A stretch of DNA of 64,000 nucleotides from the NCBI GenBank assembly GCA_001643675.2, contig LSRY02000026.1, positions 806,001-870,000 of the forward strand. The letters run 5' to 3'. Origin of the DNA: Monocercomonoides exilis PA203. Taxonomy: Eukaryota > Protista > Preaxostyla. Numbering within the stretch: the stretch's first letter is position 1; each line of letters begins with the position of its first letter. Both the position numbers and the translations under genes were made by a program. Of the stretch, positions 37,401 through 56,564 are shown piece after piece. Below the pieces are notes generated by a model. It saw nothing but the letters and a program-made list of their open reading frames with translations, searched no databases and was not told the DNA's origin.

Positions 37401-40400
37401 GTGGGGAAAGGGAAGGATGGGGTGGGTGGATACGACTCGTGGTTCTGTGGGTTTGACTATTATCCGTGTGCCACCATCATCCATGCAGCACAGGTGAGAT
37501 ATGCAGACACAAACAAGAAGATCGAATTGGATTCAGGATATGTGCTTGCTGAGGCAGTTGGAATGACAGATGGCCATGAATGGGAGATATCATGTGCGAG
37601 AAAAGGGATGGAGGTTGGGGTGAAAGCACCAGAGGATTTTGAGTCATCTTGTCTGATTGATGTGCAAAGCAAAAGTTCAATGAGAAACATCAAGTTTGGT
37701 ATTCCATCTGCTCTATCTGGTGAAACATCATCATCTCTGATCACATCCAACTCCACACTCCTCACACTCACTGACTGTTCTGTTGTTTGTTCGTCTGAGA
37801 ATTCCATTGGATACAGTTTTGTGAATGTGATTGGGGGAAAAGTGAAAGTGGAGAGATTGGTGATCAGAGAGACATTGATATTTGGAGAACATTCGCTGAT
37901 TGAGTTTAGTGAAGGGGTGGAATCAGTTGTGTTTTGCGGATGTGAGGTGAACAACATTGAGAAGAGAAGTGGAAATGGAGGATGGGTGAGTGGAGTGGTT
38001 GGGGCAGAGAGAGATGAGGGGAAGAATGGGATAATTGTGATTGAGTCGTGTGTTGTGAAGGGGTGCAGGTGTGTTGGTGGAAGAGGAGGAGGGATGAGTG
38101 TTGTTGTGAAGGGGGAAGGGAGTGTTGTTGTGAATGGGAGTTGTGTGATTGATGGGTGTGAGGCGAAGGGTTCGGGGGAGAGTTCAGATGGGAGAAGTGA
38201 AGGGAGAGGGGGAGGGATGATGATTGTGATGGAGAGCAGGGATGGTTCAATGAAAATGGAATCTGGAAGAGAGGGTTTGTTTGTGTTTGGGGAGAATAAC
38301 AAAGCTTCATATGGGAAGGATATGTTTGTTGAATGTGGTGGAGGAGTGTTGTTGGAGTGGAAAGTGAATGGGAGCTCATTTTCATTTTTTGATTTTGGTG
38401 TGATTCCAACAGATGTGTTGAAGTTGTGTGGGAGTGAGGATGGGAGAGAAGGGGAAGTGATTCCGCTGTTTGTGTATTTGTGTTCAATGGGGACAAAGCT
38501 GAGAGTTGATGGGAGAGGAGAGAGGGCACTGGATCAGAGCCATTGTGGGTTTGAGGAGTTTGGGTGTTTGACGATTGACTATTGTGTTGGGAAGAGAGCG
38601 AACATCAACATTCATGAAATTGAAGTTATCTCAGAATCATGGATAAAGAATGAGATGAAAATAGCATCATTTGAGGTTCGTGTTTCAGGGAAAGAAGAAG
38701 GGATGAGTGTGCTTGTGAGGGATGAAGGATCGATAACCCAGAACAACCTCATTGAGTGCACAAAATCATTTGAGATGGGTAATTTGTCATTTGTGCTGAA
38801 TGAAGAAATGAATGGGAAGAGAAGTGGATTTATCCACTCCTCATCATCAACCATCACAATCACTAGCTGTTCAGTCACATTTGGAAATGATGAATTGATT
38901 GGATACAATGTGATTTGCATTGAGGGAGGATGGCTGGTTGTGGATGGATTTGTGATGGAAGGGGGAGTGAGAATGAGTGGGAAATCACCAATAGTGATCA
39001 CAAATGGAGTTGAATTGGAGATGAATCACAGCCGAATGAGTGGAGTGGGAGTGACAGATGGAATTGGAGGGGGATGTTTGAATGTGGAAATGGGTGTTAA
39101 TGGGATTGTGAATATTGAGGGATGCAATTTGTCATCAGTGTGTTCAGGGGGGAGTGGGATGAAAGGGGGAGGGATGAAGATATCAGTGGGGAAGGGAGGG
39201 AGGTTGGAAATGAAAAATGTGAAATATTCAGGGTGTGAAGTGCCAAGAGAGGATGTTGAGGATGGAGGAAGAGGAATGGGAGGAGGGATGTTTGTGAAGC
39301 TGGCAGATGAGATGGGAACATTTGTGATGGAAGGGATGGAATTTGAGGGGTGTGATGGGTGGAAAGGGAAGAATGTGTTTGTGTCAGGATGGGATCTGAG
39401 AGAGATTGTGAATGAGGAGCACCTGAAATGGGAGATAAAGGAAGAGGAGTTGGGATCATTGGATGAATTGTGTGGATGGGAGAGGAAGACAGCAGGAGAG
39501 GAGGGATATGTGATTGCACTGGTTGTGTATTTGTGGAGGAACTGGAGTGGGGATGGGTTTGTTTCTCGAGAGAAAGGAGGAGACTTCAGTGGGTGTGGGT
39601 ATTCCGAAGCACCATGTTCATCGATTGACCACTTGATATCACTTCGATATCCAACACTTGGAGAAGGGGAAACTCATATTGCCATTGTGGGGTCAGGGTT
39701 GCTGAGCCATTCAATATCATTTTCTTCTTCATTTTCATCTTCAATTTCTTCATCAATATCAGAGTCACAAAAAGTTGTGATTGAAGGGACAAAGAAAGGG
39801 ACAGGGGTGACGATCAGTGATGAAGATGAGAATGATTTGTCTGATGATGATTCAATGATATCCTCGAATGTGAGTCTGTCATTTGTGAATGTGTCATTCA
39901 CCAAGCCATCCATCACAACCCATCACGAAGTGTTGATTGAATCCTCTGGAGCAAACACATTATTGTCAGTTTCAGATTGTTCATTTGGCCCAGGGAGGGG
40001 GGTGGCAGAAAGTTTTGGATATTGTGTGATGAGAGTGAATGGAGGGAGTGTTGTGATTGAGAGGTGTTCGTTGAGTTTGATTTCAGAGTTGAAAGGGTTG
40101 ATTGCCTTCAGTCCAAGTGCAGGTGAGGTGACACTTCAGAATGTGAACATCTCATTTGCTGGAGTGATAGAAAGAAGCCTGATTTCGATGATGGAAAAAG
40201 ATAACCAGATGAATGGAGAAAAGAAGGTGTTTTCAAATGGGAACAGACCAGTTTTGAGGGTTGTTGGGTGTTCATTTGCGAACATCACGAATGAAGGGAT
40301 TGGAGTGAGTGTTGTTGATGTGGGATCATTTGAGGATGGGGTGGAGTGTGTGATGGATGAGTGTTCGATGTCGAGTTGCAAGAGTGGTTTGAGTGCTGAA

Positions 40401-43400
40401 GGAGGGGGGGTGAGAGTGGTGCTGAAGAGTGGGGAATCAGTGTTGAAAGTGAATGGGAGCTCATTTTCGATGTGCAAGTGCTCGAGTGAAACAGGGTGTG
40501 GAGGAGGGCTGTTTATTGATGGATCTGACCCAAATGCGAATTATGGAAATAAAAGTCAGATTCCACCTCTGAATTTCAAGATTGTGAACATTCTGTTTGT
40601 GATGAATGAGGCACATGTGGGGAAAGACGTGTTTGTCAGATGCCACTCGATTGCTCACCAGATCAACGAAACACTGTTTGCACTGAACTACAACCAGGAG
40701 TCACTGAACTCGAACAACTCGATCTGTGGGAGGGATGGTTGGAGCGAGGGAGATGTTGATCTGATTCCGCTGATCACATTCTATTATTCGGCACAGGTGT
40801 TTGTGAGTGGGAGAGGGAGTGATGGGAGGGGGTGTGGGGCACAGAGCAACCCATGTGTGAGCATCGACTGTGGGGTTGAGCACATCGAGGAAGGGGTGAT
40901 GAATGGGATTCTGATTGATGGGGAAGGGTTTGTGAGGAAGGAGTGTGTGATTGGAGATCTGGTTGTGAATTCATTGAAAAAGACACAGGGGATTGTTTGG
41001 TTGAACGGCAAGATTGAGAAATCGGGTGAGAAGGATTGTGTGATGGAGTTTGTGAATGAATGTTCAGTGGAGAGGTGCTCATTCCAGTTTGAAAATGGAT
41101 TTGAGGCTTTTCACAATTGTCTCATGAAAGTGAAGAATGGATCACTGGAGATACAGAAATGTGAATTCTTCTATTTCCCAACAACAACAGTTGAGGAAAT
41201 GAAGTTGAACAGTTCAGTTGTGAGTGTGGAGAGTGGAGAGCTGAAGATATTTGATTCAACATTCAGAGATATTCATTCAACAATATCAGTTCTTTCATTT
41301 TGTGAAGAATCAGAAGTGACAATTGATGAAACAAGAATGTCGAACATCAAATGTGAGGGAGATGTTGTGAGTGTTGGAGGGAAAGCGAAGGTGGAGATGA
41401 AAGAGATGGGAGTTGAGAATGTGACATTGCTGTTGGAGGGATGTGTGATTGGGATGGAAGATGCTGAGCAAGAGGTGAGTGTGCTGAACAGCTCATTCGG
41501 AAAGTGTGTGAATTCTGTGGATAAGGGAAGCATGATGCAGATTAGAAATTCCAAGGATGTGAGGGTTGAGATATGTGTGTTTGATGGAGAAAGAGAAGAT
41601 GAAATAGTCAATAAAGATAACAATAGAAAAGAGGGATTATGCAAATGGAATGGGTCATTGGTTGATGTTGAGAAGAGCAAGGTGGAGATGAGGGAAACAA
41701 CGATTATGAAGAGCAAGGGAGGAGGGTTGTGGGTGAGTGGAGGGAGTGTGAGAATTGAGAAAGGAGAATTTGAGAACAACAACCCATCGATCGAGGGATA
41801 TCCATCAGCTCGAAGGAATGTGATTTGTGAAGGGGATGGGGAGTTGGATGTTGTGAGTGTGAAAGGGGGAGATGGAATGTTGCCAAACACATCGTTGTGG
41901 ATATTGGATGAGGGATGCGAATTGGGAGGGATAGCAACTGAAAGAGGATCATCATTTTTCATCCCTGTTTTGGAAGAAGTGAAGAATATTTCTCAGCCAA
42001 ATGGAAATGTGGAGTTGATGATTGTGGGAAAGCTGCTTCTGCCATGTGATCTGTCAGTGAAGATGAGCATGGGAAATGGGGATGAAGAGGAGATTGTGAG
42101 AAAGGAAATTGAAGAAGAAGGGTTTGTGTCAGAGAATGAGATTCACACATTTATTTCATGTTCGGAATGGGAGAAGGAGAGAGAAGAGACAGAAGTGAGT
42201 GTGTGGATTGTGTTTGGGAAAGGAGATTCACCTTCATCAACAGAGCCATATATCCTGAAGAATAGGAGTGAAAGTGCTGGAAAAGGAGATGAAAGGATTG
42301 TTGAAGGAGGGAAAGAAGGGAAATCATCATGGGCTGTTTTTTGTTTGATATTTATTGTTTTGTTTTTGATCGTTCTTATTGTATCTGTGATATTCATTGT
42401 TCGATGGAGAAAAGCAAAGAAAGAAAACAAAGATCTGAGAGAGATAGTGAATGATAATATCAAAAAGGATCCGAAGGCGTTTGAGATGGTGACGATGGAG
42501 ATGTCACCTGAAGAGCAGTGGAGGAGAGCTGAGAGAGAGGCTGAGAAGAAGAATGAAGAGAGGATAAAGAAGAGAGTTTATGAGAAAAGCTTGGGACACT
42601 CGGAGTCATCTGAGCATCTTCTGTCTGAGAGTGGATCGACTGAATATATTCTGGGAAGGGATTCAGACAAGATTCCTCAATGGATGCTGGAGAAGGTTGA
42701 AGAAGAAGAAATTAGAAAGAGAACTCCTTCGCCATCCATCTCATCCACTTCAACAACAGACACTTCAGACACAGATACCACTTTTGTTCGATCAGAGAGC
42801 ATGTGCCCTACCACCTCTTCTATGTCGAATCTGGTGGATGCAATTGCTTGTTCATCGCCTCATGAGAAGCTGATTGTGGATCTGAGGGATTCATTGTTCA
42901 TGCTGCTTCATGGAAGGAACAAGACAAAGGAGATGGCGATTGGCTCGTTGAAAGAAAGAGAACAAACAGCTGCCCAGATCTTGTTCTGGGTGGCCAATCT
43001 GGCACTCCACTCTTTTGATGAAATGGAAAATGGATTGTCTTCTCTTTCCACTCTGAGTCCTCACATTGTGTTGTTTTCAGAACACATGGTGATCTGCATT
43101 GTTTTGCACTCTGACTTCTCACCTGATGATAGTTCAGACTCATCATCCATCTCATCATCGACTATTGTGACATCTGCCAGTGACAATGACGATGATGATA
43201 GTGACTCTCTTCCTTCTTCTGCCTTTGAGGATGATGAATACAACAGAAAGGAGTGTTTGAGGTGGAAGGCGCCAGAGCTGCTGGTCAACAAGAAGATGGG
43301 AGCAACAAAAGAATCAGTTGTGTTTTCGATAGGGATGATGTTGTGGGAGTGTCTGACACTGGAGATCCCGTTTGGGGAGTATGAAGGAGAGGTGGCAGGG

Positions 43401-43652
43401 CAGAAGATTGTGAATGGGGAGAGGCCGAATTTGTGTGTTGTGAAAAGCTTCACGATGAAAGGGATTATTGGGAAATGTGTTGAAGAAAGGGCAGAAGAGC
43501 GGATGGGGCTGGGGGATGTGAAGAGGGGGCTGACACAGTGTCTGCCAGCAGGGTCGCTGATCTTCACGATGACAGATGCGATGGACTATGTTGGAGAGTC
43601 ATGTGCTGTGGAGGGGAGCGAGTGTTTGGTGTCGAACACAGGAGCAGAATGA
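34455..43652 (+). CDS. Giant receptor-like protein, paralog 2 (3065 aa), intact
   Basis: Uninterrupted ORF with the same architecture as 793-10065. TM is WAVFCLIFIVLFLIVLIVSVIFIV followed by RWRK. Kinase-like tail LRWKAPE...VFSIGMMLWE...GERP. Confidence 0.9.
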   Translation: MLSGTCCFVCITCVQCLCKGAANNEANLVEESINDRKSDYLGNSLFDGLPNEKNGDKNMIEMFVEGNEDGMEKDEKREKSKKNNLKMEDERNNQIWKENSVKIVNNEHFFGKREMMKIERKYEESEVEGCFVLINSSMKLKSLGLIQHDERNVVEVEDGSFFELDDCGMFILSGMSPFCLTGGCGVFQNISLSSSSTGFLKTFPSLFSSKSPKGESSEKYSVSVCSSHFSSFCVSSAPFLSSHFIPLVSLSHLTFFNISTANDSCTYPTVSFSQTSCLMNSCSFTSVCDVYDGGIVPSLNNPLASLTASNTSFVGCCRTRNVACEGTEAKKLTPVRQIIADYGANTFTWCWWNGSKTIGTSNSVSDGISSGGAIFMFNLENGELSVSHCSFNDCMAYYGGGGIMSRSIKSVESINNSFNFCTAQTYVGGGMFIFSISSCTLISKCELRNCKANSYGGGLYMESFQDSGADCVRIENEMEEGECMFDCSFSSCFVTGTSGGGMRCVIVPNAFKMRNIQFISCSALSEGGGLNLRPEKTEKPVDEFYCFFMFFHECRCRNLSFPYGHDIEFIDYFNIFMNFGIPFYECFTTNTDIQRVCYAYNYADSSDWMFDQTSKKDWLKDKTIYVSVNGSDATELCGANETFPCLTVKKGFEMCEVQISLTITLLEGDHQSETTTIEIGTKKISVIGKGRMESSIEMKSLSSTGSLFSVSTGHLGLLHMKVDCNSNTNPSPNVAVVSDGSGSLSLEDVVITRSNVGEYVISSSVFAVPLSQLSMVDVEIKDMNISQSLFSEPVLSSSSSSSSALFLTSTVSGGSTLVNLTVKNVKLIEGDGVVVAKSVAEGETFVVQNVTIEDCGCENGSGGGIKVEMETDASKLQVERTTTFKRCRSGKYGGGMMLHLADNSIDFSIASVDFSGCSASLGGNYVFVNGSDSVSWGITREKLNVQHDSSKYNEIVGYDRSDTTMGLFPLNVYLDRYPDAAHVGKGKDGVGGYDSWFCGFDYYPCATIIHAAQVRYADTNKKIELDSGYVLAEAVGMTDGHEWEISCARKGMEVGVKAPEDFESSCLIDVQSKSSMRNIKFGIPSALSGETSSSLITSNSTLLTLTDCSVVCSSENSIGYSFVNVIGGKVKVERLVIRETLIFGEHSLIEFSEGVESVVFCGCEVNNIEKRSGNGGWVSGVVGAERDEGKNGIIVIESCVVKGCRCVGGRGGGMSVVVKGEGSVVVNGSCVIDGCEAKGSGESSDGRSEGRGGGMMIVMESRDGSMKMESGREGLFVFGENNKASYGKDMFVECGGGVLLEWKVNGSSFSFFDFGVIPTDVLKLCGSEDGREGEVIPLFVYLCSMGTKLRVDGRGERALDQSHCGFEEFGCLTIDYCVGKRANINIHEIEVISESWIKNEMKIASFEVRVSGKEEGMSVLVRDEGSITQNNLIECTKSFEMGNLSFVLNEEMNGKRSGFIHSSSSTITITSCSVTFGNDELIGYNVICIEGGWLVVDGFVMEGGVRMSGKSPIVITNGVELEMNHSRMSGVGVTDGIGGGCLNVEMGVNGIVNIEGCNLSSVCSGGSGMKGGGMKISVGKGGRLEMKNVKYSGCEVPREDVEDGGRGMGGGMFVKLADEMGTFVMEGMEFEGCDGWKGKNVFVSGWDLREIVNEEHLKWEIKEEELGSLDELCGWERKTAGEEGYVIALVVYLWRNWSGDGFVSREKGGDFSGCGYSEAPCSSIDHLISLRYPTLGEGETHIAIVGSGLLSHSISFSSSFSSSISSSISESQKVVIEGTKKGTGVTISDEDENDLSDDDSMISSNVSLSFVNVSFTKPSITTHHEVLIESSGANTLLSVSDCSFGPGRGVAESFGYCVMRVNGGSVVIERCSLSLISELKGLIAFSPSAGEVTLQNVNISFAGVIERSLISMMEKDNQMNGEKKVFSNGNRPVLRVVGCSFANITNEGIGVSVVDVGSFEDGVECVMDECSMSSCKSGLSAEGGGVRVVLKSGESVLKVNGSSFSMCKCSSETGCGGGLFIDGSDPNANYGNKSQIPPLNFKIVNILFVMNEAHVGKDVFVRCHSIAHQINETLFALNYNQESLNSNNSICGRDGWSEGDVDLIPLITFYYSAQVFVSGRGSDGRGCGAQSNPCVSIDCGVEHIEEGVMNGILIDGEGFVRKECVIGDLVVNSLKKTQGIVWLNGKIEKSGEKDCVMEFVNECSVERCSFQFENGFEAFHNCLMKVKNGSLEIQKCEFFYFPTTTVEEMKLNSSVVSVESGELKIFDSTFRDIHSTISVLSFCEESEVTIDETRMSNIKCEGDVVSVGGKAKVEMKEMGVENVTLLLEGCVIGMEDAEQEVSVLNSSFGKCVNSVDKGSMMQIRNSKDVRVEICVFDGEREDEIVNKDNNRKEGLCKWNGSLVDVEKSKVEMRETTIMKSKGGGLWVSGGSVRIEKGEFENNNPSIEGYPSARRNVICEGDGELDVVSVKGGDGMLPNTSLWILDEGCELGGIATERGSSFFIPVLEEVKNISQPNGNVELMIVGKLLLPCDLSVKMSMGNGDEEEIVRKEIEEEGFVSENEIHTFISCSEWEKEREETEVSVWIVFGKGDSPSSTEPYILKNRSESAGKGDERIVEGGKEGKSSWAVFCLIFIVLFLIVLIVSVIFIVRWRKAKKENKDLREIVNDNIKKDPKAFEMVTMEMSPEEQWRRAEREAEKKNEERIKKRVYEKSLGHSESSEHLLSESGSTEYILGRDSDKIPQWMLEKVEEEEIRKRTPSPSISSTSTTDTSDTDTTFVRSESMCPTTSSMSNLVDAIACSSPHEKLIVDLRDSLFMLLHGRNKTKEMAIGSLKEREQTAAQILFWVANLALHSFDEMENGLSSLSTLSPHIVLFSEHMVICIVLHSDFSPDDSSDSSSISSSTIVTSASDNDDDDSDSLPSSAFEDDEYNRKECLRWKAPELLVNKKMGATKESVVFSIGMMLWECLTLEIPFGEYEGEVAGQKIVNGERPNLCVVKSFTMKGIIGKCVEERAEERMGLGDVKRGLTQCLPAGSLIFTMTDAMDYVGESCAVEGSECLVSNTGAE

Positions 43653-43840
43653 AATATGGGGGAGAGAGGAGGATGAGGATGTTGATTGAGATGAAATGGA
43701 TGAAATGGGTGGATGAGTCTTGGAGCAAGGGGCTAATGTGTGTGTACATGGGGATGGGGATGGGGAAGAGGGAGCGAGTGCAAAGTGGAGTGTGACGTTG
43801 CTGTCGCAGTGTGTTGAACTTTGCAAGAGAGAGCCGAACA

Positions 43841-43882
43841 GAAAGTGAGGGGTATGAAAGTGAGGGGTATGAAAGTGATGGG
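43841..43882 (+). repeat. 15-bp tandem repeat GAAAGTGAGGGGTAT x~2.8 in the receptor 3' region (mirrored at ~47191-47232)
   Basis: Directly visible. Confidence 0.85.
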
Positions 43883-44875
43883 CAGGAAAAAGTTCAGTAT
43901 CTGGAAATGTGCTTTATTCTGCAAGTGGAGAGAATTGGATGATCATTTCATTGATTGGTTGATTGTGTGAATGTTTTTCTTGTTTTTATGTTTCATGCTT
44001 TTATTTTTTGAGAATTTTGTTTTTTGCATTTCTATGTTTTGTTAGAGAGAAATACTCAGAATTGAATGGAGATCAATCTCTCTTGTGAAATGAAAAACAC
44101 TGAATGGAGCCAATGCTTGTCTTGAGATTGGAAGGCTTAATCAAATTGAATCTGTTTGAATGTCTTCTTTTTCTTTTCTTCTCTTCTCTTCTCAGGAAGC
44201 AGAGCTGATGGGCACAAACACCGGAATGGACAGATAATACCACAACAATAAAAACGATTCAGTAATCATGTCTATTGATAATTGAATGTGATGAACTTTG
44301 TTTTCAAAAGTGATATATATGAATAGCTATATAAATTTAATGAATGTGTTATTTTCTTTTTTTTTTTTTGAAGAAGAAGAAGGTTTGTTGATTTGATGCT
44401 ATCAAATGTGTGAGATCAAAAGATAAATGGGGGATTACAGATTGAGAAAGAAATTGAATTTCAGTGTGAAGTGATTGAGGGGAGTCACTGAAATATCAAA
44501 TGTTTCAGACAGTATTGTTCATGCATGAAAACAACAAATTCATAAAAGATTATTTAAATTGAAAATAGCACTCACATATTCTTAATCAAATGCGATATGA
44601 AAACCTGGTTAATTTTTTAAGCTCTGAAAAATTACTTTTTTTGAGTTAAACTAACAAAATTCGAAATTCAAGGCAAATCACACAAACTATTGTATATTTT
44701 TAAAAACGTCTTCTGAATGATTATTAAAATTTTTCTCTCGTTCCGACTTTTTCGAAATCAAATATGGTGAGTTATTTATCTTATCCACTTTTTTTATCGG
44801 TACCTAAAATTTCTGGCTCTCCAGAGCACTTTCAGAAAAAAATAAATAATAGAAAATTAAAAATATTAATAATTA

Positions 44876-45488
44876 GGGTAATTGCACAATATACGACCGT
44901 TAATAAAAATTTGTGAGGATGATTATAACATTATTATTAACTGTTTCGTAAAGTTATGATGTCTATCTTTTTTGTGGGAACTTTTGTTTTAAAATGAATC
45001 AAATTATTTTTTCCCTCAAAATTGGTATTGATCAAAAATTTTTTAACATCAATTATATTCAACAATAAACAAAATAAACAGATTAATATTTTCAATTCGA
45101 CCAGAACGCACTCAAATATGCTTTGAACATATTCAATTTAACAAAACCCCAATTTTAATAGAACATTTTTTGATCAATGTTAAATAATTTTTATAGTTAA
45201 TAAAATAAAGCAATTTATGCAACAGAATTTAACCCTTACAAGTTGATTTTGGATAAAACCCTAACATTAAAACTGTGATAAAATAAGCAAACAAATAAAA
45301 ACACTAAAAAAACTCAGTTATTTCATTTGAAATTGAAAAGGATTTAGAATTTTCTAGAAAATTTAAAATAAAATATTTCACAGTTTCCGCACACAATCAT
45401 CAGAAAAAAACTTATGTGCACAATATGTTGTTATCATAGCTGTGGAATATGACAATTTTGTGACCGGTCGTATCTTGTGCATTAACCA
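44876..45488. mobile_element. 613-bp TA-flanked MITE-like element forming the inner end of the left palindrome arm
   Basis: TA|GGGTAATTGCACAATATACGACCG ... CGGTCGTATCTTGTGCATTAACCA|TA. TIRs match 20/24. Non-coding interior. Confidence 0.75.
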
Positions 45489-45585
45489 TACGAGCAAGTT
45501 TTTAATCTTAAAAATAAAACAAAGAACGCCAGATCTATTCACAAAAATTAAAATATGAAAAAATATTTTCAGGAATTGCTAATTA

Positions 45586-46198
45586 TGGTTAATGCACAAG
45601 ATACGACCGGTCACAAAATTGTCATATTCCACAGCTATGATAACAACATATTGTGCACATAAGTTTTTTTCTGATGATTGTGTGCGGAAACTGTGAAATA
45701 TTTTATTTTAAATTTTCTAGAAAATTCTAAATCCTTTTCAATTTCAAATGAAATAACTGAGTTTTTTTAGTGTTTTTATTTGTTTGCTTATTTTATCACA
45801 GTTTTAATGTTAGGGTTTTATCCAAAATCAACTTGTAAGGGTTAAATTCTGTTGCATAAATTGCTTTATTTTATTAACTATAAAAATTATTTAACATTGA
45901 TCAAAAAATGTTCTATTAAAATTGGGGTTTTGTTAAATTGAATATGTTCAAAGCATATTTGAGTGCGTTCTGGTCGAATTGAAAATATTAATCTGTTTAT
46001 TTTGTTTATTGTTGAATATAATTGATGTTAAAAAATTTTTGATCAATACCAATTTTGAGGGAAAAAATAATTTGATTCATTTTAAAACAAAAGTTCCCAC
46101 AAAAAAGATAGACATCATAACTTTACGAAACAGTTAATAATAATGTTATAATCATCCTCACAAATTTTTATTAACGGTCGTATATTGTGCAATTACCC
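45586..46198. mobile_element. Inverted copy of the 613-bp MITE-like element (inner end of the right arm)
   Basis: Reverse complement of 44876-45488. Confidence 0.75.
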
Positions 46199-47420
46199 TA
46201 ATTATTAATATTTTTAATTTTCTATTATTTATTTTTTTCTGAAAGTGCTCTGGAGAGCCAGAAATTTTAGGTACCGATAAAAAAAGTGGATAAGATAAAT
46301 AACTCACCATATTTGATTTCGAAAAAGTCGGAACGAGAGAAAAATTTTAATAATCATTCAGAAGACGTTTTTAAAAATATACAATAGTTTGTGTGATTTG
46401 CCTTGAATTTCGAATTTTGTTAGTTTAACTCAAAAAAAGTAATTTTTCAGAGCTTAAAAAAATTAACCAGGTTTTCATATCGCATTTGATTAAGAATATG
46501 TGAGTGCTATTTTCAATTTAAATAATCTTTTATGAATTTGTTGTTTTCATGCATGAACAATACTGTCTGAAACATTTGATATTTCAGTGACTCCCCTCAA
46601 TCACTTCACACTGAAATTCAATTTCTTTCTCAATCTGTAATCCCCCATTTATCTTTTGATCTCACACATTTGATAGCATCAAATCAACAAACCTTCTTCT
46701 TCTTCAAAAAAAAAAAGAAAATAACACATTCATTAAATTTATATAGCTATTCATATATATCACTTTTGAAAACAAAGTTCATCACATTCAATTATCAATA
46801 GACATGATTACTGAATCGTTTTTATTGTTGTGGTATTATCTGTCCATTCCGGTGTTTGTGCCCATCAGCTCTGCTTCCTGAGAAGAGAAGAGAAGAAAAG
46901 AAAAAAGAAGACATTCAAACAGATTCAATTTGATTAAGCCTTCCAATCTCAAGACAAGCATTGGCTCCATTCAGTGTTTTTCATTTCACAAGAGAGATTG
47001 ATCTCCATTCAATTCTGAGTATTTCTCTCTAACAAAACATAGAAATGCAAAAACAAAATTCTCAAAAAATAAAAGCATGAAACATAAAAACAAGAAAAAC
47101 ATTCACACAATCAACCAATCAATGAAATGATCATCCAATTCTCTCCACTTGCAGAATAAAGCACATTTCCAGATACTGAACTTTTTCCTGCCCATCACTT
47201 TCATACCCCTCACTTTCATACCCCTCACTTTCTGTTCGGCTCTCTCTTGCAAAGTTCAACACACTGCGACAGCAACGTCACACTCCACTTTGCACTCGCT
47301 CCCTCTTCCCCATCCCCATCCCCATGTACACACACATTAGCCCCTTGCTCCAAGACTCATCCACCCATTTCATCCATTTCATCTCAATCAACATCCTCAT
47401 CCTCCTCTCTCCCCCATATT

Positions 47421-50400
47421 TCATTCTGCTCCTGTGTTCGACACCAAACACTCGCTCCCCTCCACAGCACATGACTCTCCAACATAGTCCATCGCATCTG
47501 TCATCGTGAAGATCAGCGACCCTGCTGGCAGACACTGTGTCAGCCCCCTCTTCACATCCCCCAGCCCCATCCGCTCTTCTGCCCTTTCTTCAACACATTT
47601 CCCAATAATCCCTTTCATCGTGAAGCTTTTCACAACACACAAATTCGGCCTCTCCCCATTCACAATCTTCTGCCCTGCCACCTCTCCTTCATACTCCCCA
47701 AACGGGATCTCCAGTGTCAGACACTCCCACAACATCATCCCTATCGAAAACACAACTGATTCTTTTGTTGCTCCCATCTTCTTGTTGACCAGCAGCTCTG
47801 GCGCCTTCCACCTCAAACACTCCTTTCTGTTGTATTCATCATCCTCAAAGGCAGAAGAAGGAAGAGAGTCACTATCATCATCGTCATTGTCACTGGCAGA
47901 TGTCACAATAGTCGATGATGAGATGGATGATGAGTCTGAACTATCATCAGGTGAGAAGTCAGAGTGCAAAACAATGCAGATCACCATGTGTTCTGAAAAC
48001 AACACAATGTGAGGACTCAGAGTGGAAAGAGAAGACAATCCATTTTCCATTTCATCAAAAGAGTGGAGTGCCAGATTGGCCACCCAGAACAAGATCTGGG
48101 CAGCTGTTTGTTCTCTTTCTTTCAACGAGCCAATCGCCATCTCCTTTGTCTTGTTCCTTCCATGAAGCAGCATGAACAATGAATCCCTCAGATCCACAAT
48201 CAGCTTCTCATGAGGCGATGAACAAGCAATTGCATCCACCAGATTCGACATAGAAGAGGTGGTAGGGCACATGCTCTCTGATCGAACAAAAGTGGTATCT
48301 GTGTCTGAAGTGTCTGTTGTTGAAGTGGATGAGATGGATGGCGAAGGAGTTCTCTTTCTAATTTCTTCTTCTTCAACCTTCTCCAGCATCCATTGAGGAA
48401 TCTTGTCTGAATCCCTTCCCAGAATATATTCAGTCGATCCACTCTCAGACAGAAGATGCTCAGATGACTCCGAGTGTCCCAAGCTTTTCTCATAAACTCT
48501 CTTCTTTATCCTCTCTTCATTCTTCTTCTCAGCCTCTCTCTCAGCTCTCCTCCACTGCTCTTCAGGTGACATCTCCATCGTCACCATCTCAAACGCCTTC
48601 GGATCCTTTTTGATATTATCATTCACTATCTCTCTCAGATCTTTGTTTTCTTTCTTTGCTTTTCTCCATCGAACAATGAATATCACAGATACAATAAGAA
48701 CGATCAAAAACAAAACAATAAATATCAAACAAAAAACAGCCCATGATGATTTCCCTTCTTTCCCTCCTTCAACAATCCTTTCATCTCCTTTTCCAGCACT
48801 TTCACTCCTATTCTTCAGGATATATGGCTCTGTTGATGAAGGTGAATCTCCTTTCCCAAACACAATCCACACACTCACTTCTGTCTCTTCTCTCTCCTTC
48901 TCCCATTCCGAACATGAAATAAATGTGTGAATCTCATTCTCTGACACAAACCCTTCTTCTTCAATTTCCTTTCTCACAATCTCCTCTTCATCCCCATTTC
49001 CCATGCTCATCTTCACTGACAGATCACATGGCAGAAGCAGCTTTCCCACAATCATCAACTCCACATTTCCATTTGGCTGAGAAATATTCTTCACTTCTTC
49101 CAAAACAGGGATGAAAAATGATGATCCTCTTTCAGTTGCTATCCCTCCCAATTCGCATCCCTCATCCAATATCCACAACGATGTGTTTGGCAACATTCCA
49201 TCTCCCCCTTTCACACTCACAACATCCAACTCCCCATCCCCTTCACAAATCACATTCCTTCGAGCTGATGGATATCCCTCGATCGATGGGTTGTTGTTCT
49301 CAAATTCTCCTTTCTCAATTCTCACACTCCCTCCACTCACCCACAACCCTCCTCCCTTGCTCTTCATAATCGTTGTTTCCCTCATCTCCACCTTGCTCTT
49401 CTCAACATCAACCAATGACCCATTCCATTTGCATAATCCCTCTTTTCTATTGTTATCTTTATTGACTATTTCATCTTCTCTTTCTCCATCAAACACACAT
49501 ATCTCAACCCTCACATCCTTGGAATTTCTAATCTGCATCATGCTTCCCTTATCCACAGAATTCACACACTTTCCGAATGAGCTGTTCAGCACACTCACCT
49601 CTTGCTCAGCATCTTCCATCCCAATCACACATCCCTCCAACAGCAATGTCACATTCTCAACTCCCATCTCTTTCATCTCCACCTTCGCTTTCCCTCCAAC
49701 ACTCACAACATCTCCCTCACATTTGATGTTCGACATTCTTGTTTCATCAATTGTCACTTCTGATTCTTCACAAAATGAAAGAACTGATATTGTTGAATGA
49801 ATATCTCTGAATGTTGAATCAAATATCTTCAGCTCTCCACTCTCCACACTCACAACTGAACTGTTCAACTTCATTTCCTCAACTGTTGTTGTTGGGAAAT
49901 AGAAGAATTCACATTTCTGTATCTCCAGTGATCCATTCTTCACTTTCATGAGACAATTGTGAAAAGCCTCAAATCCATTTTCAAACTGGAATGAGCACCT
50001 CTCCACTGAACATTCATTCACAAACTCCATCACACAATCCTTCTCACCCGATTTCTCAATCTTGCCGTTCAACCAAACAATCCCCTGTGTCTTTTTCAAT
50101 GAATTCACAACCAGATCTCCAATCACACACTCCTTCCTCACAAACCCTTCCCCATCAATCAGAATCCCATTCATCACCCCTTCCTCGATGTGCTCAACCC
50201 CACAGTCGATGCTCACACATGGGTTGCTCTGTGCCCCACACCCCCTCCCATCACTCCCTCTCCCACTCACAAACACCTGTGCCGAATAATAGAATGTGAT
50301 CAGCGGAATCAGATCAACATCTCCCTCGCTCCAACCATCCCTCCCACAGATCGAGTTGTTCGAGTTCAGTGACTCCTGGTTGTAGTTCAGTGCAAACAGT

Positions 50401-53400
50401 GTTTCGTTGATCTGGTGAGCAATCGAGTGGCATCTGACAAACACGTCTTTCCCCACATGTGCCTCATTCATCACAAACAGAATGTTCACAATCTTGAAAT
50501 TCAGAGGTGGAATCTGACTTTTATTTCCATAATTCGCATTTGGGTCAGATCCATCAATAAACAGCCCTCCTCCACACCCTGTTTCACTCGAGCACTTGCA
50601 CATCGAAAATGAGCTCCCATTCACTTTCAACACTGATTCCCCACTCTTCAGCACCACTCTCACCCCCCCTCCTTCAGCACTCAAACCACTCTTGCAACTC
50701 GACATCGAACACTCATCCATCACACACTCCACCCCATCCTCAAATGATCCCACATCAACAACACTCACTCCAATCCCTTCATTCGTGATGTTCGCAAATG
50801 AACACCCAACAACCCTCAAAACTGGTCTGTTCCCATTTGAAAACACCTTCTTTTCTCCATTCATCTGGTTATCTTTTTCCATCATCGAAATCAGGCTTCT
50901 TTCTATCACTCCAGCAAATGAGATGTTCACATTCTGAAGTGTCACCTCACCTGCACTTGGACTGAAGGCAATCAACCCTTTCAACTCTGAAATCAAACTC
51001 AACGAACACCTCTCAATCACAACACTCCCTCCATTCACTCTCATCACACAATATCCAAAACTTTCTGCCACCCCCCTCCCTGGGCCAAATGAACAATCTG
51101 AAACTGACAATAATGTGTTTGCTCCAGAGGATTCAATCAACACTTCGTGATGGGTTGTGATGGATGGCTTGGTGAATGACACATTCACAAATGACAGACT
51201 CACATTCGAGGATATCATTGAATCATCATCAGACAAATCATTCTCATCTTCATCACTGATCGTCACCCCTGTCCCTTTCTTTGTCCCTTCAATCACAACT
51301 TTTTGTGACTCTGATATTGATGAAGAAATTGAAGATGAAAATGAAGAAGAAAATGATATTGAATGGCTCAGCAACCCTGATCCCACAATGGCAATATGAG
51401 TTTCCCCTTCTCCAAGTGTTGGATATCGAAGTGATATCAAGTGGTCAATCGATGAACATGGTGCTTCGGAATACCCACACCCACTGAAGTCTCCTCCTTT
51501 CTCTCGAGAAACAAACCCATTTCCACTTCAGTTCCTCCACAAATACACAACCAATGGAATCACATATCCCTCCTCTCCTGTCGTCTTCCTCTCCCATCCA
51601 CACAACTCATCCAATGATCCCAACTCCTCTTCCTTTATCTCCCATTTCAGGTGCTCCTCATTCACAATCTCTCTCAGATCCCATCCTGACACAAACACAT
51701 TCTTCCCTTTCCACCCATCACACCCCTCAAATTCCATCCCTTCCATCACAAATGTTCCCATCTCATCTGCCAGCTTCACAAACATCCCTCCTCCCATTCC
51801 TCTTCCTCCATCCTCAACATCCTCTCTTGGCACTTCACACCCTGAATATTTCACATTTTTCATTTCCAACCTCCCTCCCTTCCCCACTGATATCTTCATC
51901 CCTCCCCCTTTCATCCCACTCCCCCCTGAACACACTGATGACAAATTGCATCCCTCAATATTCACAATCCCATTAACACCCATTTCCACATTCAAACATC
52001 CCCCTCCAATTCCATCTGTCACTCCCACTCCACTCATTCGGCTGTGATTCATCTCCAATTCAACTCCATTTGTGATCACTATTGGTGATTTCCCACTCAT
52101 TCTCACTCCCCCTTCCATCACAAATCCATCCACAACCAGCCATCCTCCCTCAATGCAAATCACATTGTATCCAATCAATTCATCATTTCCAAATGTGACT
52201 GAACAGCTAGTGATTGTGATGGTTGATGATGAGGAGTGGATAAATCCACTTCTCTTCCCATTCATCTCTTCATTCAGCACAAATGTCAAATGTCTCATCT
52301 CAAATGATTTTGTGCACTCAATGAGGTTGTTCTGGGTTATCGATCCTTCATCCCTCACAAGCACACTCATCCCTTCTTCTTTCCCTGAAACACGAACCTC
52401 AAATGATGCTATTTTCATCTCATTCTTTATCCATGATTCTGAGATAACTTCAATTTCATGAATGTTGATGTTCGCTCTCTTCCCAACACAATAGTCAATC
52501 GTCAAACACCCAAACTCCTCAAACCCACAATGGCTCTGATCCAGTGCCCTCTCTCCTCTCCCATCAACTCTCAGCTTTGTCCCCATTGAACACAAATACA
52601 CAAACAGCGGAATCACTTCCCCTTCTCTCCCATCCTCACTCCCACACAACTTCAACACATCTGTTGGAATCACACCAAAATCAAAAAATGAAAATGAGCT
52701 CCCATTCACTTTCCACTCCAACAACACTCCTCCACCACATTCAACAAACACATCCTTCCCATATGAAGCTTTGTTATCCTCTCCAAACACAAACAAACCT
52801 TCTCCTCCAGATTCCATTTTCATTGAACCATCCCTGCTCTCCATCACAATCATCATCCCTCCCCCTCTCCCTTCACTTCTCCCATCTGAACTCTCCCCCG
52901 AACCCTTCGCCTCACACCCATCAATCACACAACTCCCATTCACAACAACACTCCCTTCCCCCTTCACAACAACACTCATCCCTCCTCCTCTTCCACCAAC
53001 ACACCTGCACCCCTTCACAACACACGACTCAATCACAATTATCCCATTCTTCCCCTCATCTCTCTCTGCCCCAACCACTCCACTCACCCATCCTCCATTT
53101 CCACTTCTCTTCTCAATGTTGTTCACCTCACATCCGCAAAACACAACTGATTCCACCCCTTCACTAAACTCAATCAGCGAATGTTCTCCAAATATCAATG
53201 TCTCTCTGATCACCAATCTCTCCACTTTCACTTTTCCCCCAATCACATTCACAAAACTGTATCCAATGGAATTCTCAGACGAACAAACAACAGAACAGTC
53301 AGTGAGTGTGAGGAGTGTGGAGTTGGATGTGATCAGAGATGATGATGTTTCACCAGATAGAGCAGATGGAATACCAAACTTGATGTTTCTCATTGAACTT

Positions 53401-56400
53401 TTGCTTTGCACATCAATCAGACAAGATGACTCAAAATTCTCTGGTGCTTTCACCCCAACTTCCATCCCTTTTGTCACACATGATATCTCCCATTCATGGC
53501 CATCTGTCATTCCAACTGTCTCAGCAAGCTCATATCCTGAATCCAATTCGATCTTCTTGTTTGTGCCTGGATATCTCACCTGCACTGCATGGGTGATGGT
53601 GGTACACGGATAATAGTCAAACCCACAGAACCACGAGTCGTATCCACCCAGCCCATCCTTCCCCTTCCCCGCATGTGCTGCATCTGGATATGAATCCAAA
53701 TACACATTCAGTGGGAACAGCCCCATTGTTGTGTCACTCCGATCATATCCCACAATCTCATTGTATTTTGAACTGTCATGTTGAACATTCAGCTTTTCTC
53801 TTGTTATTCCCCAGCTCACTGAATCGCTCCCATTCACAAATACATAATTCCCTCCCAATGAGGCAGAACACCCTGAGAAGTCAACTGACGCAATCGAGAA
53901 GTCAATCGAGTTGTCAGCCAGATGCAGCATCATCCCTCCTCCATATTTGCCACTTCTGCATCTCTTGAATGTTGTTGTTCTTTCAACCTGAAGCTTGCTT
54001 GCATCTGTTTCCATCTCAACCTTGATTCCTCCTCCACTGCCATTTTCACACCCACAATCTTCGATTGTCACATTCTGAACAACAAATGTCTCCCCTTCTG
54101 CCACACTCTTTGCCACAACCACCCCATCTCCTTCAATCAACTTCACATTCTTCACCGTTAAGTTCACCAGCGTGCTCCCTCCAGATACTGTGGATGTCAA
54201 AAAAAGGGCAGAGGAGGAAGATGAAGAAGAAGATAAAACAGGTTCAGAGAACAACGATTGAGAAATATTCATATCTTTGATCTCCACATCAACCATCGAC
54301 AGCTGTGAAAGTGGAACCGCAAACACTGACGAAGAAATAACATATTCTCCAACATTACTCCTTGTAATCACAACATCCTCCAATGAGAGTGACCCACTCC
54401 CATCAGATACCACAGCCACATTCGGCGAAGGATTTGTATTTGAGTTACAGTCAACCTTCATGTGCAACAAACCAAGGTGACCTGTTGAAACACTGAACAG
54501 CGATCCAGTTGATGAAAGGGATTTCATTTCAATCGAACTCTCCATCCTTCCTTTCCCAATGACTGAAATCTTCTTTGTCCCAATCTCAATTGTTGTTGTC
54601 TCGCTTTGATGATTCCCTTCCATCAGCGTTATATTCAAATTGACCTGGATCACACTCTTATCAACTGCAACACCAATGGTTCGGCATGCTCTTGATTCGT
54701 TTGCCCCACAAAGCGGAGTTGCATCACTCCCATTCACAGAAACAAAAATAGTCTTATCCTTCAGCCAATCCCACTTTTCTGTGTGCTGATATGTCCAAGT
54801 ATTTGCATTTGAGTAGTTGTAGGCATAGCACATTCTCTTCTCATCTGTGTTTGTGGTGTAACATTCATAGAACGGATTATTTTGGGATAAATATACACTG
54901 TAGTAATCATAATATACCATATCATGCCCATATGGTGTATCTGCAGAGCATTTGCATTCATGGAAAAACAGGAAATAACAATAAATTACATCATTTTGTG
55001 ATGCTTGCCTGTATGGATAAAGATACTATCCTCCACCATATGACGATGCTGAACATGAAATAAACTGAATGCTCCTCATTTTGAATTGTGTCGCAGGAAC
55101 AGTTTTACAAAACATACCTCCGCCAAGTGTATTTGTCACCGAGCATGAAGTGAAACAGCAGTTGAACACACAAGCACTCTCCCCTTTTCCATTTTCTGTC
55201 GGAATGCAATCCGATCCCGAAACCTGAAAATTTTCGAGAAAAAGTCCTCCTCCATTGTAATTTGCTTTGCAACTCTGAAATTCACATTCGCTGATCTGAA
55301 CACATGTTTAAATCACATAAATGCACATCCCTCCTCCAGCATTTCTTTGAACGCTGCAACAGTTGAACGAGTTATTTGAAATATGAACGGATTTAATACA
55401 ATAGCAATGAATACTTCCTCCTGAATAATAAGCATCACAATCATCGAAAGTGCATTGAGAAACAAAAAGCATTCCATTACCCAGATTAAACATGCAGATT
55501 GCACCTCCACTTGATATCCCATCGGTGAATGAATCGCTTGTTCCTGTTGCTTTCGATCCATTCCACTCACACCAAATAAAAGTGTTTGTCCCATTTTTTG
55601 TTTCATTCTGTCTCCCTGGTGTTAGCTTATTGTCTGCAGTTCCTTCACATACAACATTTCTTGTCCTGCAACATCCAACAAACGAGGTGTTTGAGGCAGA
55701 CAAGGAAGCCAAGGGATTGTTGAGAGAATGGACAATCCTGCCATCATATGTGTCGCTAACTGATGAAAATGAGCAACTGTTCATCATGCATGAAGTTTGG
55801 GAAAATGAAGCTGTTGGAGATGCGCAAACCTCATTTGCTGTTGAAATATTGAAAAATGTCAGTTGAGAAAGTGAGATTAGGGGTATTGAAGGGGATGAGA
55901 GGAATGGAGAAGATGACACACAAAAACATGAGAAATGAGATTCACTTACCGAAATAATGGAAGATTTCGAAATGTCAATGTCAAATTGTTCGGAAGTGAA
56001 AAGAGGAGGAAATTCATTCAAACCTTCAACATTTGGCTGAACAGAAACGTTAACAAATGACCCAAAGCTTTCTTCCAGTTCTATCGGAGATAAATGCTGC
56101 TCAACAAAAAGAATGCATTCTTTCATCAAAACAATGCTTCCTTTTTTCACAATGAGAATTCTTTTTGTCCCTTTTTCTCTCATCAACAGTTTCATTTCCA
56201 TGATTGATGAATTGAAGCATTCCAAGCAACCCTCAATTTCACTGGATTTGCAAATATTCACATTCTTCAAAATTCCATTTTCTTTTCCAAATTCTTCTTT
56301 GTTGTTTTTTTCATCTTTCTGAAAGTCTTTTCCACGATTTTCACTCAACTTCATTTTTTTATTCAATCTTGTCGGATCTTCGTTGCATTTTATATACTCA

Positions 56401-56564
56401 GTATTTGAAGGGTTTTTGCTAATCTGAAGCATGTTTCCATTCAATCCAATCATTTCTTCTTCTTTCATGTTTTCTCCAACATTGATTGAGACTTCATTCA
56501 TAACAATAAAAAGAATGCAATTCAAATAAGCACAAAAAACAAACATCCACATTCCAAACAACAT
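47421..56564 (-). pseudogene. Giant receptor-like paralog 3: full-length single frame (3048 codons) with three in-frame nonsense codons; chimeric
   Basis: Track ORFs 55308-56564, 51528-54920 and 47421-51440 share one frame. Stops are TAA 55308-55310 (Ser in paralogs), TAG 55026-55028 (Leu) and TGA 51528-51530 (Trp). The sequence between stops still translates to family sequence. Confidence 0.9.

Follow-up and report, generated by a model that had tools for sequence, protein, structure and literature searches.

What produces a near-perfect palindrome that turns at the end of a transposon? In Monocercomonoides exilis PA203, a mirror-image pair of giant receptor-kinase genes makes up a palindromic region of ~20 kb, and its turning point adjoins the end of an old Merlin-type MITE nested inside a hairpin-forming (foldback) transposon. 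The window referred to below is the whole stretch of DNA analyzed, 64,000 nucleotides long (contig 21 positions 806001–870000), and its features are collected in Table 1. The original prediction attributed the palindrome to the transposon, by way of aberrant or alternative transposition or of two head-to-head MITEs. The reading preferred here, with a probability of roughly 0.55, is that a structure-driven fold-back or template switch made the palindrome and that the MITE was carried along as a passenger.

Table 1. Features of the palindrome and of the related receptor-kinase genes (positions in the window)
Feature	Position	Strand	Remarks
Left arm	35133..45490		near-identical to right arm over ~36461-45490; beyond, older homology of 62-78%
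Right arm	45584..55940		near-identical to left arm over 45584-~54613; contiguous with spacer in E2 frame
Spacer	45491..45583	+	93 bp, non-palindromic; E2 homology 45488-45576, 93% identity to E2 copies elsewhere
Microhomology ATA	45488..45490		common to MITE flanking duplication (ATAATTAG) and native E2 (...GAAAATA/CGAGC, the slash marking the boundary)
Left MITE copy	44877..45487	+	outer flank ATAATTAG (44869-44876); inner flank ATACGAGC; lacks target duplication of its own
Right MITE copy	45587..46197	-	CTAATTAT on both sides as perfect 8-bp duplications (45579-45586, 46198-46205)
Outer E2 terminal repeat, left arm	44755..44868	-	mirror of 46206-46319
Outer E2 terminal repeat, right arm	46206..46319	+	contiguous with spacer once MITE is removed
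Intact 3065-aa ORF	34455..43652	+	C-terminal kinase-like domain (PF07714); gene tail toward palindrome centre
Broken mirror paralog	47421..56564	-	split ORFs 47421-51440, 51528-54920, 55308-56564
Third paralog (paralog 1)	1142..9980	-	71-98% identical to arms, mosaic pattern

The two arms face each other across 93 bp and differ in a patterned way. Over the inner 5.8 kb, comparison of arm with arm finds no substitutions and five one-base differences, all in T runs. Farther out, 37 substitutions are grouped in four patches (within 37379–39692 on the left and 51381–53694 on the right), one of which carries a stop codon in one arm only, and past 36460 and 54613 homology persists in register at 62–78%. 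The mirror paralog has a premature stop at 51528–51530, in the codon equivalent to W1697. With the third paralog as outgroup, the right arm agrees with paralog 1 at 20 of the 37 substituted positions, the left arm at 16 and neither arm at 1; recent conversion from paralog 1 was rejected as the source of the patches because they split 20 to 16 between the arms. The four patches fit islands of older divergence that would have been left unconverted, and the arms thus combine converted tracts and unconverted islands within pre-existing inverted paralogs, as in a palindrome maintained by arm-to-arm gene conversion. This sequence comparison shows that the two genes were paralogs, standing tail to tail, before the palindrome event. 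The event overwrote one of two inverted paralogs already in place and did not multiply a single gene, which replaces the earlier idea of a transposon-driven route for multiplying receptor genes. Since each of the three paralogs is a mosaic, either arm could have been the donor at the outer boundary. The locus documents the swapping of tails and bodies between neighbouring genes of the receptor-kinase family.

The element at the turning point is a real dispersed repeat, as had been proposed, with a length of 611 bp (GGTAATTGC...GCATTAACC) instead of the 613 bp first given. A genome-wide search recovered at least 16 full-length copies on other contigs (75–87% identity), and the terminal-repeat pattern of the family gave 100 matches against 1 for a control pattern; the terminal repeats in the window fit this pattern with 0 mismatches. 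The TA flanks taken earlier for the target site did not hold up: perfect 8-bp duplications of unrelated, varied sequence border 9 of the 16 full-length copies, as well as longer relatives (L044, L047, L048 and L049) and both copies on contig 27, and the TA at the palindrome centre is part of ATAATTAG. A Stowaway or Tc1-mariner-type MITE was rejected, since the 8-bp duplications flanking the dispersed copies have no fixed TA at start or end. The ends of the element (GGTAATTGCACAATATACGACCG and GGTTAATGCACAAGATACGACCG) have the 5'-GG termini of the Merlin superfamily, for which 24-bp terminal repeats and 8- or 9-bp target duplications have also been described (PMC8101967).

The expected autonomous DDE transposase with the same terminal repeats was found by pairing terminal-repeat matches. 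Five ORFs from elements bounded by the terminal repeats of the MITE (L044, L045, L047 and L048) match PF12762 with E values of 1e-11 to 1e-23. Intact transposase ORFs of 344 and 348 aa occur among these relatives, the latter spanning positions 2–150 of the 153 in the DDE_Tnp_IS1595 profile, and MITE positions 1–165 and 506–611 are 74–76% identical to the ends of a 1.5-kb element. On these sequence features, the 611-bp element is assigned to the Merlin (DDE_Tnp_IS1595) family, with which it shares 5'-GG termini, 24-bp terminal repeats, 8-bp duplications and, in its full-length relatives, the transposase domain (PMC8101967). Merlin families in Monocercomonoides are already on record (PMC8101967). 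However, the 611-bp non-autonomous derivative is absent from that account, in which the word 'MITE' does not occur, and the target duplication is clearly 8 bp here, whereas 'no clear TSDs consensus' is given there. Two near-identical 1.5-kb copies with different 8-bp duplications, one of them with an intact 344-aa ORF, show that the family moved copies in this genome recently. Two other leads to an autonomous element were rejected. Partial MITE matches on contig 80 belong to MITE copies with a 4.3-kb insert, a nested DIRS/PAT-like retroelement that encodes a reverse transcriptase, an RNase-H-like domain, a Dam-like methylase and a Flp-like recombinase, and the ORF of a candidate on contig 12 has no Pfam match.

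The flanks of the two MITE copies in the window are unequal. ATAATTAG stands on both sides of the right copy, and the left copy has ATAATTAG on one side and ATACGAGC on the other. The left copy, with this inner flank and no duplication of its own, was therefore made by copying of the arm and not by insertion; by its flanks, the right copy is the original insertion. The two copies are 100% identical to each other, while other members of the family differ from them by 13–25%, so the insertion is far older than the palindrome.

The source of the 93-bp spacer, which the original prediction had left to be found, is the E2 repeat family, with complete copies elsewhere in the genome. When the right MITE and one 8-bp duplication are removed, the spacer joins the right-arm flank and the joined sequence aligns with E2 copies over ~210 bp. 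Complete E2 copies are foldbacks, with arms of 262–402 bp at 97–99% identity and loops of 250–457 nt. By this alignment, the spacer is part of the long terminal repeat of a foldback-type E2, a repeat that had received the MITE as an insertion. Within the window, E2 is present only at 45488–45576, once, and at 44755–44866 and 46208–46319; the inner E2 repeat (the 133–155 nt inward of the spacer), the loop and the inner part of the left repeat are absent from it. The spacer is thus single copy and, in the ancestral sequence inferred from E2, runs on directly into one arm, as in a fold-back; this contiguity makes the right arm the template side at the centre.

At the junction itself, the palindromic match runs 3 bp (ATA/TAT) beyond the end of the MITE. 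AAATA precedes C/TGAGC in 12 of 12 E2 arms examined, which accounts for the ATA microhomology at the new junction. Because ATA belongs to both the 8-bp duplication and native E2, the breakpoint lies 0–3 bp from the MITE end and is not provably exact; E2 homology begins at 45488, the first base beyond the MITE, and therefore allows a junction exactly at the element end. The claim that the arms terminate precisely at a transposon terminal repeat thus stands as to the transposon end at the turning point and to within 3 bp as to position. The 3-bp microhomology is expected by chance at 8.7% of random junctions in local DNA and so lends the fold-back little weight. The 20-mer GCATTAACCATACGAGCAAG across the junction is unique in the assembly. 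Under a purely random fold-back, a breakpoint within 3 bp of one particular element end would be unlikely (by rough estimate, a few bases in a couple of kilobases), which counts against the preferred reading.

We infer a starting state, from other E2 copies, in which tail-to-tail receptor-kinase paralogs had between them an E2 with long repeats and a loop, the old Merlin MITE being inserted in its right repeat. A break or a stalled replication fork in or beside E2 would have set off the event. A 3' end would then have found a partner right beside the MITE, 93 nt off on its own strand or on the sister strand, and paired with it over 3 bp (ATA/TAT). Copying would have run outward through the MITE, the outer E2 and the 3' flank and on into the body of the right-hand gene. 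About 9 kb farther along, homology near 36460 would have brought the new strand back onto the left-hand paralog, whose body and 3' flank would be overwritten together with the inner part of E2. The product would be a near-perfect palindrome of 2 x 9 kb, with the former fold-back loop as its 93-nt spacer. The turning point may sit at the MITE edge because the insertion interrupts the E2 repeat: the uninterrupted inner hairpin stem (~230–250 bp) would end exactly there, and at the base of such a stem one would naturally expect polymerase stalling or cleavage by a structure-specific nuclease.

An independent palindrome on contig 25 bears on this reading and on its rivals. Its arms are at least 4.9 kb long around a 64-nt spacer, and its turning point falls in the loop of a foldback MITE that is complete and comes from another family; its Merlin-like end is 1.17 kb from the centre, with none at the centre. 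The suggested check for other palindromes centred on the 611-bp element thus came out negative on contig 25, and a foldback-element context fits better than the earlier interpretation. The same palindrome has the exact structure that would follow the first step of a two-step route, with a complete foldback MITE at the centre and its loop as the spacer. In that route, the E2 repeats would snap back and prime a perfect palindrome centred on the whole E2, the MITE would be copied into both arms, and a central deletion would follow. E2 has the long, near-perfect repeats required, and asymmetric central deletions of long palindromes are well established. The deletion would cover ~650–860 bp between two ATA triplets, removing the left inner repeat, the loop and 133–155 nt of the right inner repeat. 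However, two or three events are then needed where one suffices, the left inner E2 repeat and the loop have left no trace in the window, and the position of the deletion end at the MITE edge goes unexplained, which makes the route doubtful. The transposase offers an explanation of equal, low probability. A Merlin transposase would nick the inner end of the old MITE, and the freed 3'-OH (...GCATTAACC) would attack the opposite strand 96 nt away, or prime a template switch there, to give a hairpin-capped end that is replicated into a palindrome. The E2 homology from 45488 permits a junction exactly at the element end, the terminal repeats of the MITE match the family pattern perfectly, the MITE shares subterminal homology with the 1.5-kb elements, and the family has intact ORFs and shows recent activity. 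Against this, no new 8-bp duplication is present and no second element end stands beside ATACGAGC anywhere in the assembly, the 100 terminal-repeat matches include no other head-to-head pair of Merlin ends, the contig 25 palindrome turns in a foldback MITE instead of at a Merlin end, and the position inside a foldback element becomes a coincidence. To our knowledge, the cleavage mode of Merlin transposases is uncharacterized, which also counts against the proposal. An inverted pair of Merlin elements 5.3 kb apart on contig 27 was rejected as a second Merlin-linked palindrome, as the repeat is limited to the elements and each has its own duplication. The fuller proposal, that one-ended, off-target strand transfer or a template switch ~96 nt away from a nick made by an active transposase left a hairpin-capped chromosome end, and that gene-bearing palindromes arise directly from the action of transposase on dead MITEs, is slightly less probable still; if true, such action would reshuffle the receptor-kinase genes of M. 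exilis.

Alternative transposition, as put forward originally, lacks support in its two-ended form, which should create a new 8-bp duplication beside a second element end; there is none locally or elsewhere in the assembly. Only the inner end of the left MITE is at the new junction, and at the outer ends the old duplication persists. A search of the assembly for the reciprocal product (E2 inner sequence and ATACGAGC beside a Merlin end) returned only noise with 3 mismatches, and no element end beside ATACGAGC/GCTCGTAT was found in the assembly. The other origin suggested at first, in which two independent head-to-head insertions 93 bp apart nucleated homogenization that spread outward, would account for identical MITE copies facing each other, but the left copy has the outer duplication of the right copy and no inner one of its own, and the two are 100% identical, against a divergence of 13% or more for every other member of the family; the target-duplication pattern makes this origin extremely improbable. 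An assembly artefact, in which Nanopore reads and Canu mis-joined or homogenized two inverted paralogs and the junction at 45487–45491 is not present in the cell, is improbable to a lesser degree. The assembly is ONT-only (Canu), polished by Nanopolish and ten rounds of Pilon, and its read N50 of 8.9 kb (PMC8767320) is shorter than the arms; arm identity broken only at homopolymers could result from cross-mapped polishing. Logan contigs (one sample of one study, over 43000–48000) are short pieces that fit both arms, and the records listed include no demonstrable bridge over the junction. Nevertheless, each of the four runs supplies contigs over the central bins, with no loose end or joint at 45487–45491 among the rows listed, the spacer is genomic E2 sequence and not adapter, running without a gap into one arm in the E2 frame, and the locus lies inside a long contig. 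The arms also merge in register into diverged older homology (62–78%) and keep four patches of real, clustered substitutions, one with a one-arm stop codon, in agreement with the earlier argument that a simple fold-back read artefact is unlikely. One Logan joint, from 45570 to 46217 with 28 other letters between, was rejected as an empty allele of the site, since it represents a different E2 copy that lacks the MITE. At 45586, one loose end is, by its flank, the MITE copy on contig 69, and those at 45585 presumably belong to other MITE copies.

For the preferred fold-back or template switch there is no need to invoke a transposase reaction; the locus bears the marks of fold-back repair at hairpin-forming transposons, a signature found again elsewhere in this genome. 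The layout of the nested MITE suggests a rule in which an insertion that interrupts a foldback stem sets the position of the turn. The kind of mechanism is not new; the value of the locus lies in the annotation of this genome and in a natural, fixed example of an inverted-duplication junction in a eukaryotic genome, with a base-level anatomy that reveals the template arm, the origin of the spacer and the overwriting of one paralog body by the other.

In maize, Ac/Ds undergoes alternative transposition of the sister-chromatid and reversed-ends types, which connects transposon ends with the inverted duplication of neighbouring genes, the link made in the original prediction. Its products carry an element terminus at each new junction and share a new 8-bp duplication. 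By contrast, only one junction touches an element end here, with no new duplication. With mammalian sex-chromosome palindromes, which arm-to-arm gene conversion keeps uniform (PMC6790999), the locus shares multi-kilobase arms near 100% identity, a unique spacer, paired genes and patchy differences. It departs from them in the far smaller size of its arms, in a gene copy already disabled, in a centre made of transposon sequence and in patches exchanged with a third copy 26 kb away. In junction structure, the locus resembles fold-back (hairpin-primed) inverted duplications. In human cases the spacer is single copy and continues one of the arms, and the inverted microhomology is 2–8 bp (PMC3907307); these cases, together with the palindromic amplification in yeast and CHO cells (PMC10622511), share with this locus a short single-copy spacer that continues one arm, inverted microhomology where the spacer meets the inverted copy (3 bp here) and nearby inverted repeats as seeds. 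The spacer measures 93 nt here, compared with 0.8–70 kb in the human cases (PMC3907307). The M. exilis palindrome also differs in being fixed in a protist reference strain, in having its turning point where a MITE nested inside a foldback element ends and in being interstitial, its resolution having come through homology to an inverted paralog already present instead of through a terminal deletion, telomere or translocation.

The palindrome is genuine: as first proposed, it is an inverted repeat with a 93-nt spacer, and a single collinear inverted alignment pairs 35133-45490 with 55940-45584. The window spans 806001-870000 of contig 21, and searches covered all 101 contigs (82.3 Mb) of its assembly; the published Monocercomonoides exilis PA203 assembly is a Nanopore/Canu assembly (PMC8767320). 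Identity between the arms varies stepwise with distance from the centre. The inner 5.8 kb contain no substitutions and five one-base differences, all in T runs, and 37 substitutions lie in four clusters 5.8-8.1 kb from the centre (see the table). Beyond 8.1 kb the arms are identical again up to ~9.0 kb; at ~36460/54613 identity drops sharply to 62-78%, and the alignment stays in register for a further 1.3 kb.

Coordinates of features in the window and in two pieces from elsewhere in the assembly (L052, L053)
Feature	Location	Strand	Remarks
Left-arm gene	34455-43652	+	intact 3065-aa ORF, C-terminal kinase-like domain
Arm difference patch 1	37379-37635		
Arm difference patch 2	38268-38322		
Arm difference patch 3	38778-38807		
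Arm difference patch 4	39467-39692		
E2 sequence in window	45488-45576		present once
E2 sequence in window	44755-44866 / 46208-46319		one per arm
Merlin copies of L053	contig 27: 1039956-1041454 and 1046737-1048233		inverted orientation, 5.3 kb apart
L052 palindrome	contig 25: 2414200-2424150		centre L052 4938-5001, 64-nt spacer

Of two receptor-kinase paralogs in inverted orientation, one was overwritten by the palindrome event; the arm genes are oriented tail to tail. The right-arm gene, a mirror copy of the left, is split into three ORFs; its stop at 51528-51530 (mirror of 39543-39545) corresponds to W1697 in the left copy, and the third receptor-kinase gene (paralog 1, 1142-9980) also has Trp there. 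This stop codon is confined to an unconverted difference patch, so the intact left copy avoided importing it. Paralog 1 resembles the arms as a mosaic, at 71-98% identity. Of the 37 positions where the arms differ, it agrees with the right arm at 20, with the left arm at 16 and with neither at one. This split rejects an import from paralog 1 and marks the patches as islands left from older divergence of two paralogs that already existed. Immediately past the arm boundary, the left arm shares ~98% identity with paralog 1 and the right arm has diverged; farther out, the relation flips. All three receptor genes are therefore mosaics produced by conversion. Within the left-arm gene, 36197-36445 is ~98% identical to 8134-8380 of paralog 1, 26 kb away, which looks like a separate recent conversion adjoining the arm-to-arm tract. 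The gene bodies (36001-44000 and 48001-56000) have a coding-strand GC skew of ~+0.45 and a GC content of 43-44%, against ~32% around them.

The original prediction for the centre was largely right, except for its classification of the element by TA flanks. The element is a dispersed repeat, with 16 full-length copies on other contigs (75-87% identity) plus fragments, and its 23-nt terminal pattern matches 100 times, a control pattern once. Alignment of the copies sets the ends at GGTAATTGC...GCATTAACC and shortens the element from 613 to 611 bp (44877-45487 and 45587-46197). The flanks follow no TA rule: 9 of the 16 copies lie between perfect 8-bp duplications, whose sequences (for example GAGTTGCA, AAGGATGT and AAGAAAAG) are unrelated. 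An autonomous DDE transposase with the same terminal repeats was also found, in longer elements of 1.5-2.9 kb with 8-bp duplications (L044, L045, L047 and L048) that encode PF12762 DDE_Tnp_IS1595 (E values down to 1e-23). The ends of the 1.5-kb Merlin element match MITE positions 1-165 and 506-611 at 74-76% identity. Merlin families are already known in Monocercomonoides, and the published criteria are GG termini, 8-9-bp duplications and DDE_Tnp_IS1595 (PMC8101967); since GG termini, 8-bp duplications and relatives encoding this domain match them, the element is a Merlin MITE. Two 1.5-kb Merlin copies on contig 27 are one indel apart, carry distinct perfect 8-bp duplications (TAGTCAGC and ACGTTAAT) and retain an intact 344-aa transposase ORF in one copy, so the family transposed recently. 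Elsewhere, a 4.3-kb DIRS/PAT-like retroelement (RT, RNase-H-like domain, Dam-like methylase and Flp-like tyrosine recombinase) lies inside a MITE copy; this composite is present twice on contig 80, ~430 kb apart in opposite orientations (L041, 287016-291954; L043, 723609-728919).

The two central MITE copies are not equivalent. The right copy is flanked at both ends, in element orientation, by ATAATTAG (CTAATTAT on the + strand, at 45579-45586 and 46198-46205), and the left copy has ATAATTAG as its outer and ATACGAGC as its inner flank. As only the right copy has duplications on both sides, it is the original insertion, and the left copy arose by copying of the arm. Two independent head-to-head insertions are excluded by the inner flank ATACGAGC, which has no matching duplication.

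The source of the spacer, which the original prediction had left to be found, is the foldback family E2. The spacer matches ~40 scored places genome-wide (from 162 candidates), most of them inverted pairs ~650 bp apart. E2 copies are of foldback type: their arms measure 262-402 bp and match each other at 97-99%, and their loops span 250-457 nt; their ends read ...GACCCTA on both sides (e.g. L035 694-1747 and L033 1379-2355, pieces from elsewhere in the assembly), compatible with a TA duplication. When the right MITE and one 8-bp duplication are deleted in silico, the spacer joins the right-arm flank, and the joined stretch aligns to E2 arms over ~210 bp. This alignment places the MITE insertion in an E2 copy, within its right terminal repeat, and shows the spacer to be native E2 sequence that continues into the right arm. 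Missing from the window are E2's 133-155 nt inner repeat, its loop and the inner part of its left repeat. E2 contains a small internal hairpin, GCTCG-N8-CGAGC, precisely at the position of the window's junction.

At the new junction, 12/12 E2 arms examined read ...AAATA followed by C/TGAGCAAG, and the MITE with its duplication reads ...TTAACC, ATA and ATTAG in succession. Bases 45488-45490 (ATA) are therefore common to both parent sequences, a microhomology of 3 bp. The arms were predicted to stop exactly at the transposon end; the break does adjoin the MITE end, placed only within 0-3 bp. The junction 20-mer occurs once in the assembly. Random junctions in local DNA give at least 3 bp of microhomology at 8.7%, so the observed 3 bp fit a microhomology-mediated event and prove little.

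In the simplest single event giving the observed centre, a 3' end would arise at the E2 position preceding CGAGC, pair by ATA/TAT with a site 93 nt off, adjoining the MITE, and be extended outward for ~9 kb, after which homology would let the left paralog capture the new strand. An identical product is expected from a break with intrastrand fold-back and from a replication-fork U-turn. As the reason for the turn at the MITE edge, we infer that the MITE insertion broke the E2 repeat, leaving an uninterrupted inner stem of ~230-250 bp that ends exactly there, where a polymerase could stall or a junction-specific nuclease could cut. A two-step route, in which E2 snap-back yields a perfect palindrome that then suffers a central deletion, is plausible and close to this model.

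The originally proposed initiation by a transposase nick at the MITE end would fit an active Merlin family and an E2 homology that starts directly past the last MITE base, but it is not the best-supported origin: a new 8-bp duplication is absent, a search of the assembly found no reciprocal junction, and the 100 terminal-pattern matches include no further head-to-head Merlin ends. The one other large palindrome examined does not centre on the Merlin MITE. The contig 25 palindrome (L052), with arms of at least 4.9 kb reaching past the ends of the fetched piece and stretches 96-99% identical, has its turning point in the loop of a complete ~230-bp foldback MITE of a family other than E2 (>100 genome matches; at ~156-385 of a 541-nt query, spacer at 239-302), and a Merlin-like end lies in its arms 1.17 kb from the centre. 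This context supports a structural cause in the window. Reads at the window's junction are represented only by short Logan contigs from one sample, none of which demonstrably bridges it. An assembly artefact is unlikely because the spacer is genomic sequence, older homology runs in register beyond the arms, and substitutions are specific to single arms.

In published fold-back duplications, the spacer corresponds to the loop and continues into one of the arms, and inverted microhomology is 2-8 bp (PMC3907307). The palindrome resembles them in having a spacer contiguous with one arm and a 3-bp microhomology within that range, and the locus is a clearly resolved example of an established class, fold-back palindromes that are seeded where transposon sequence forms hairpins.
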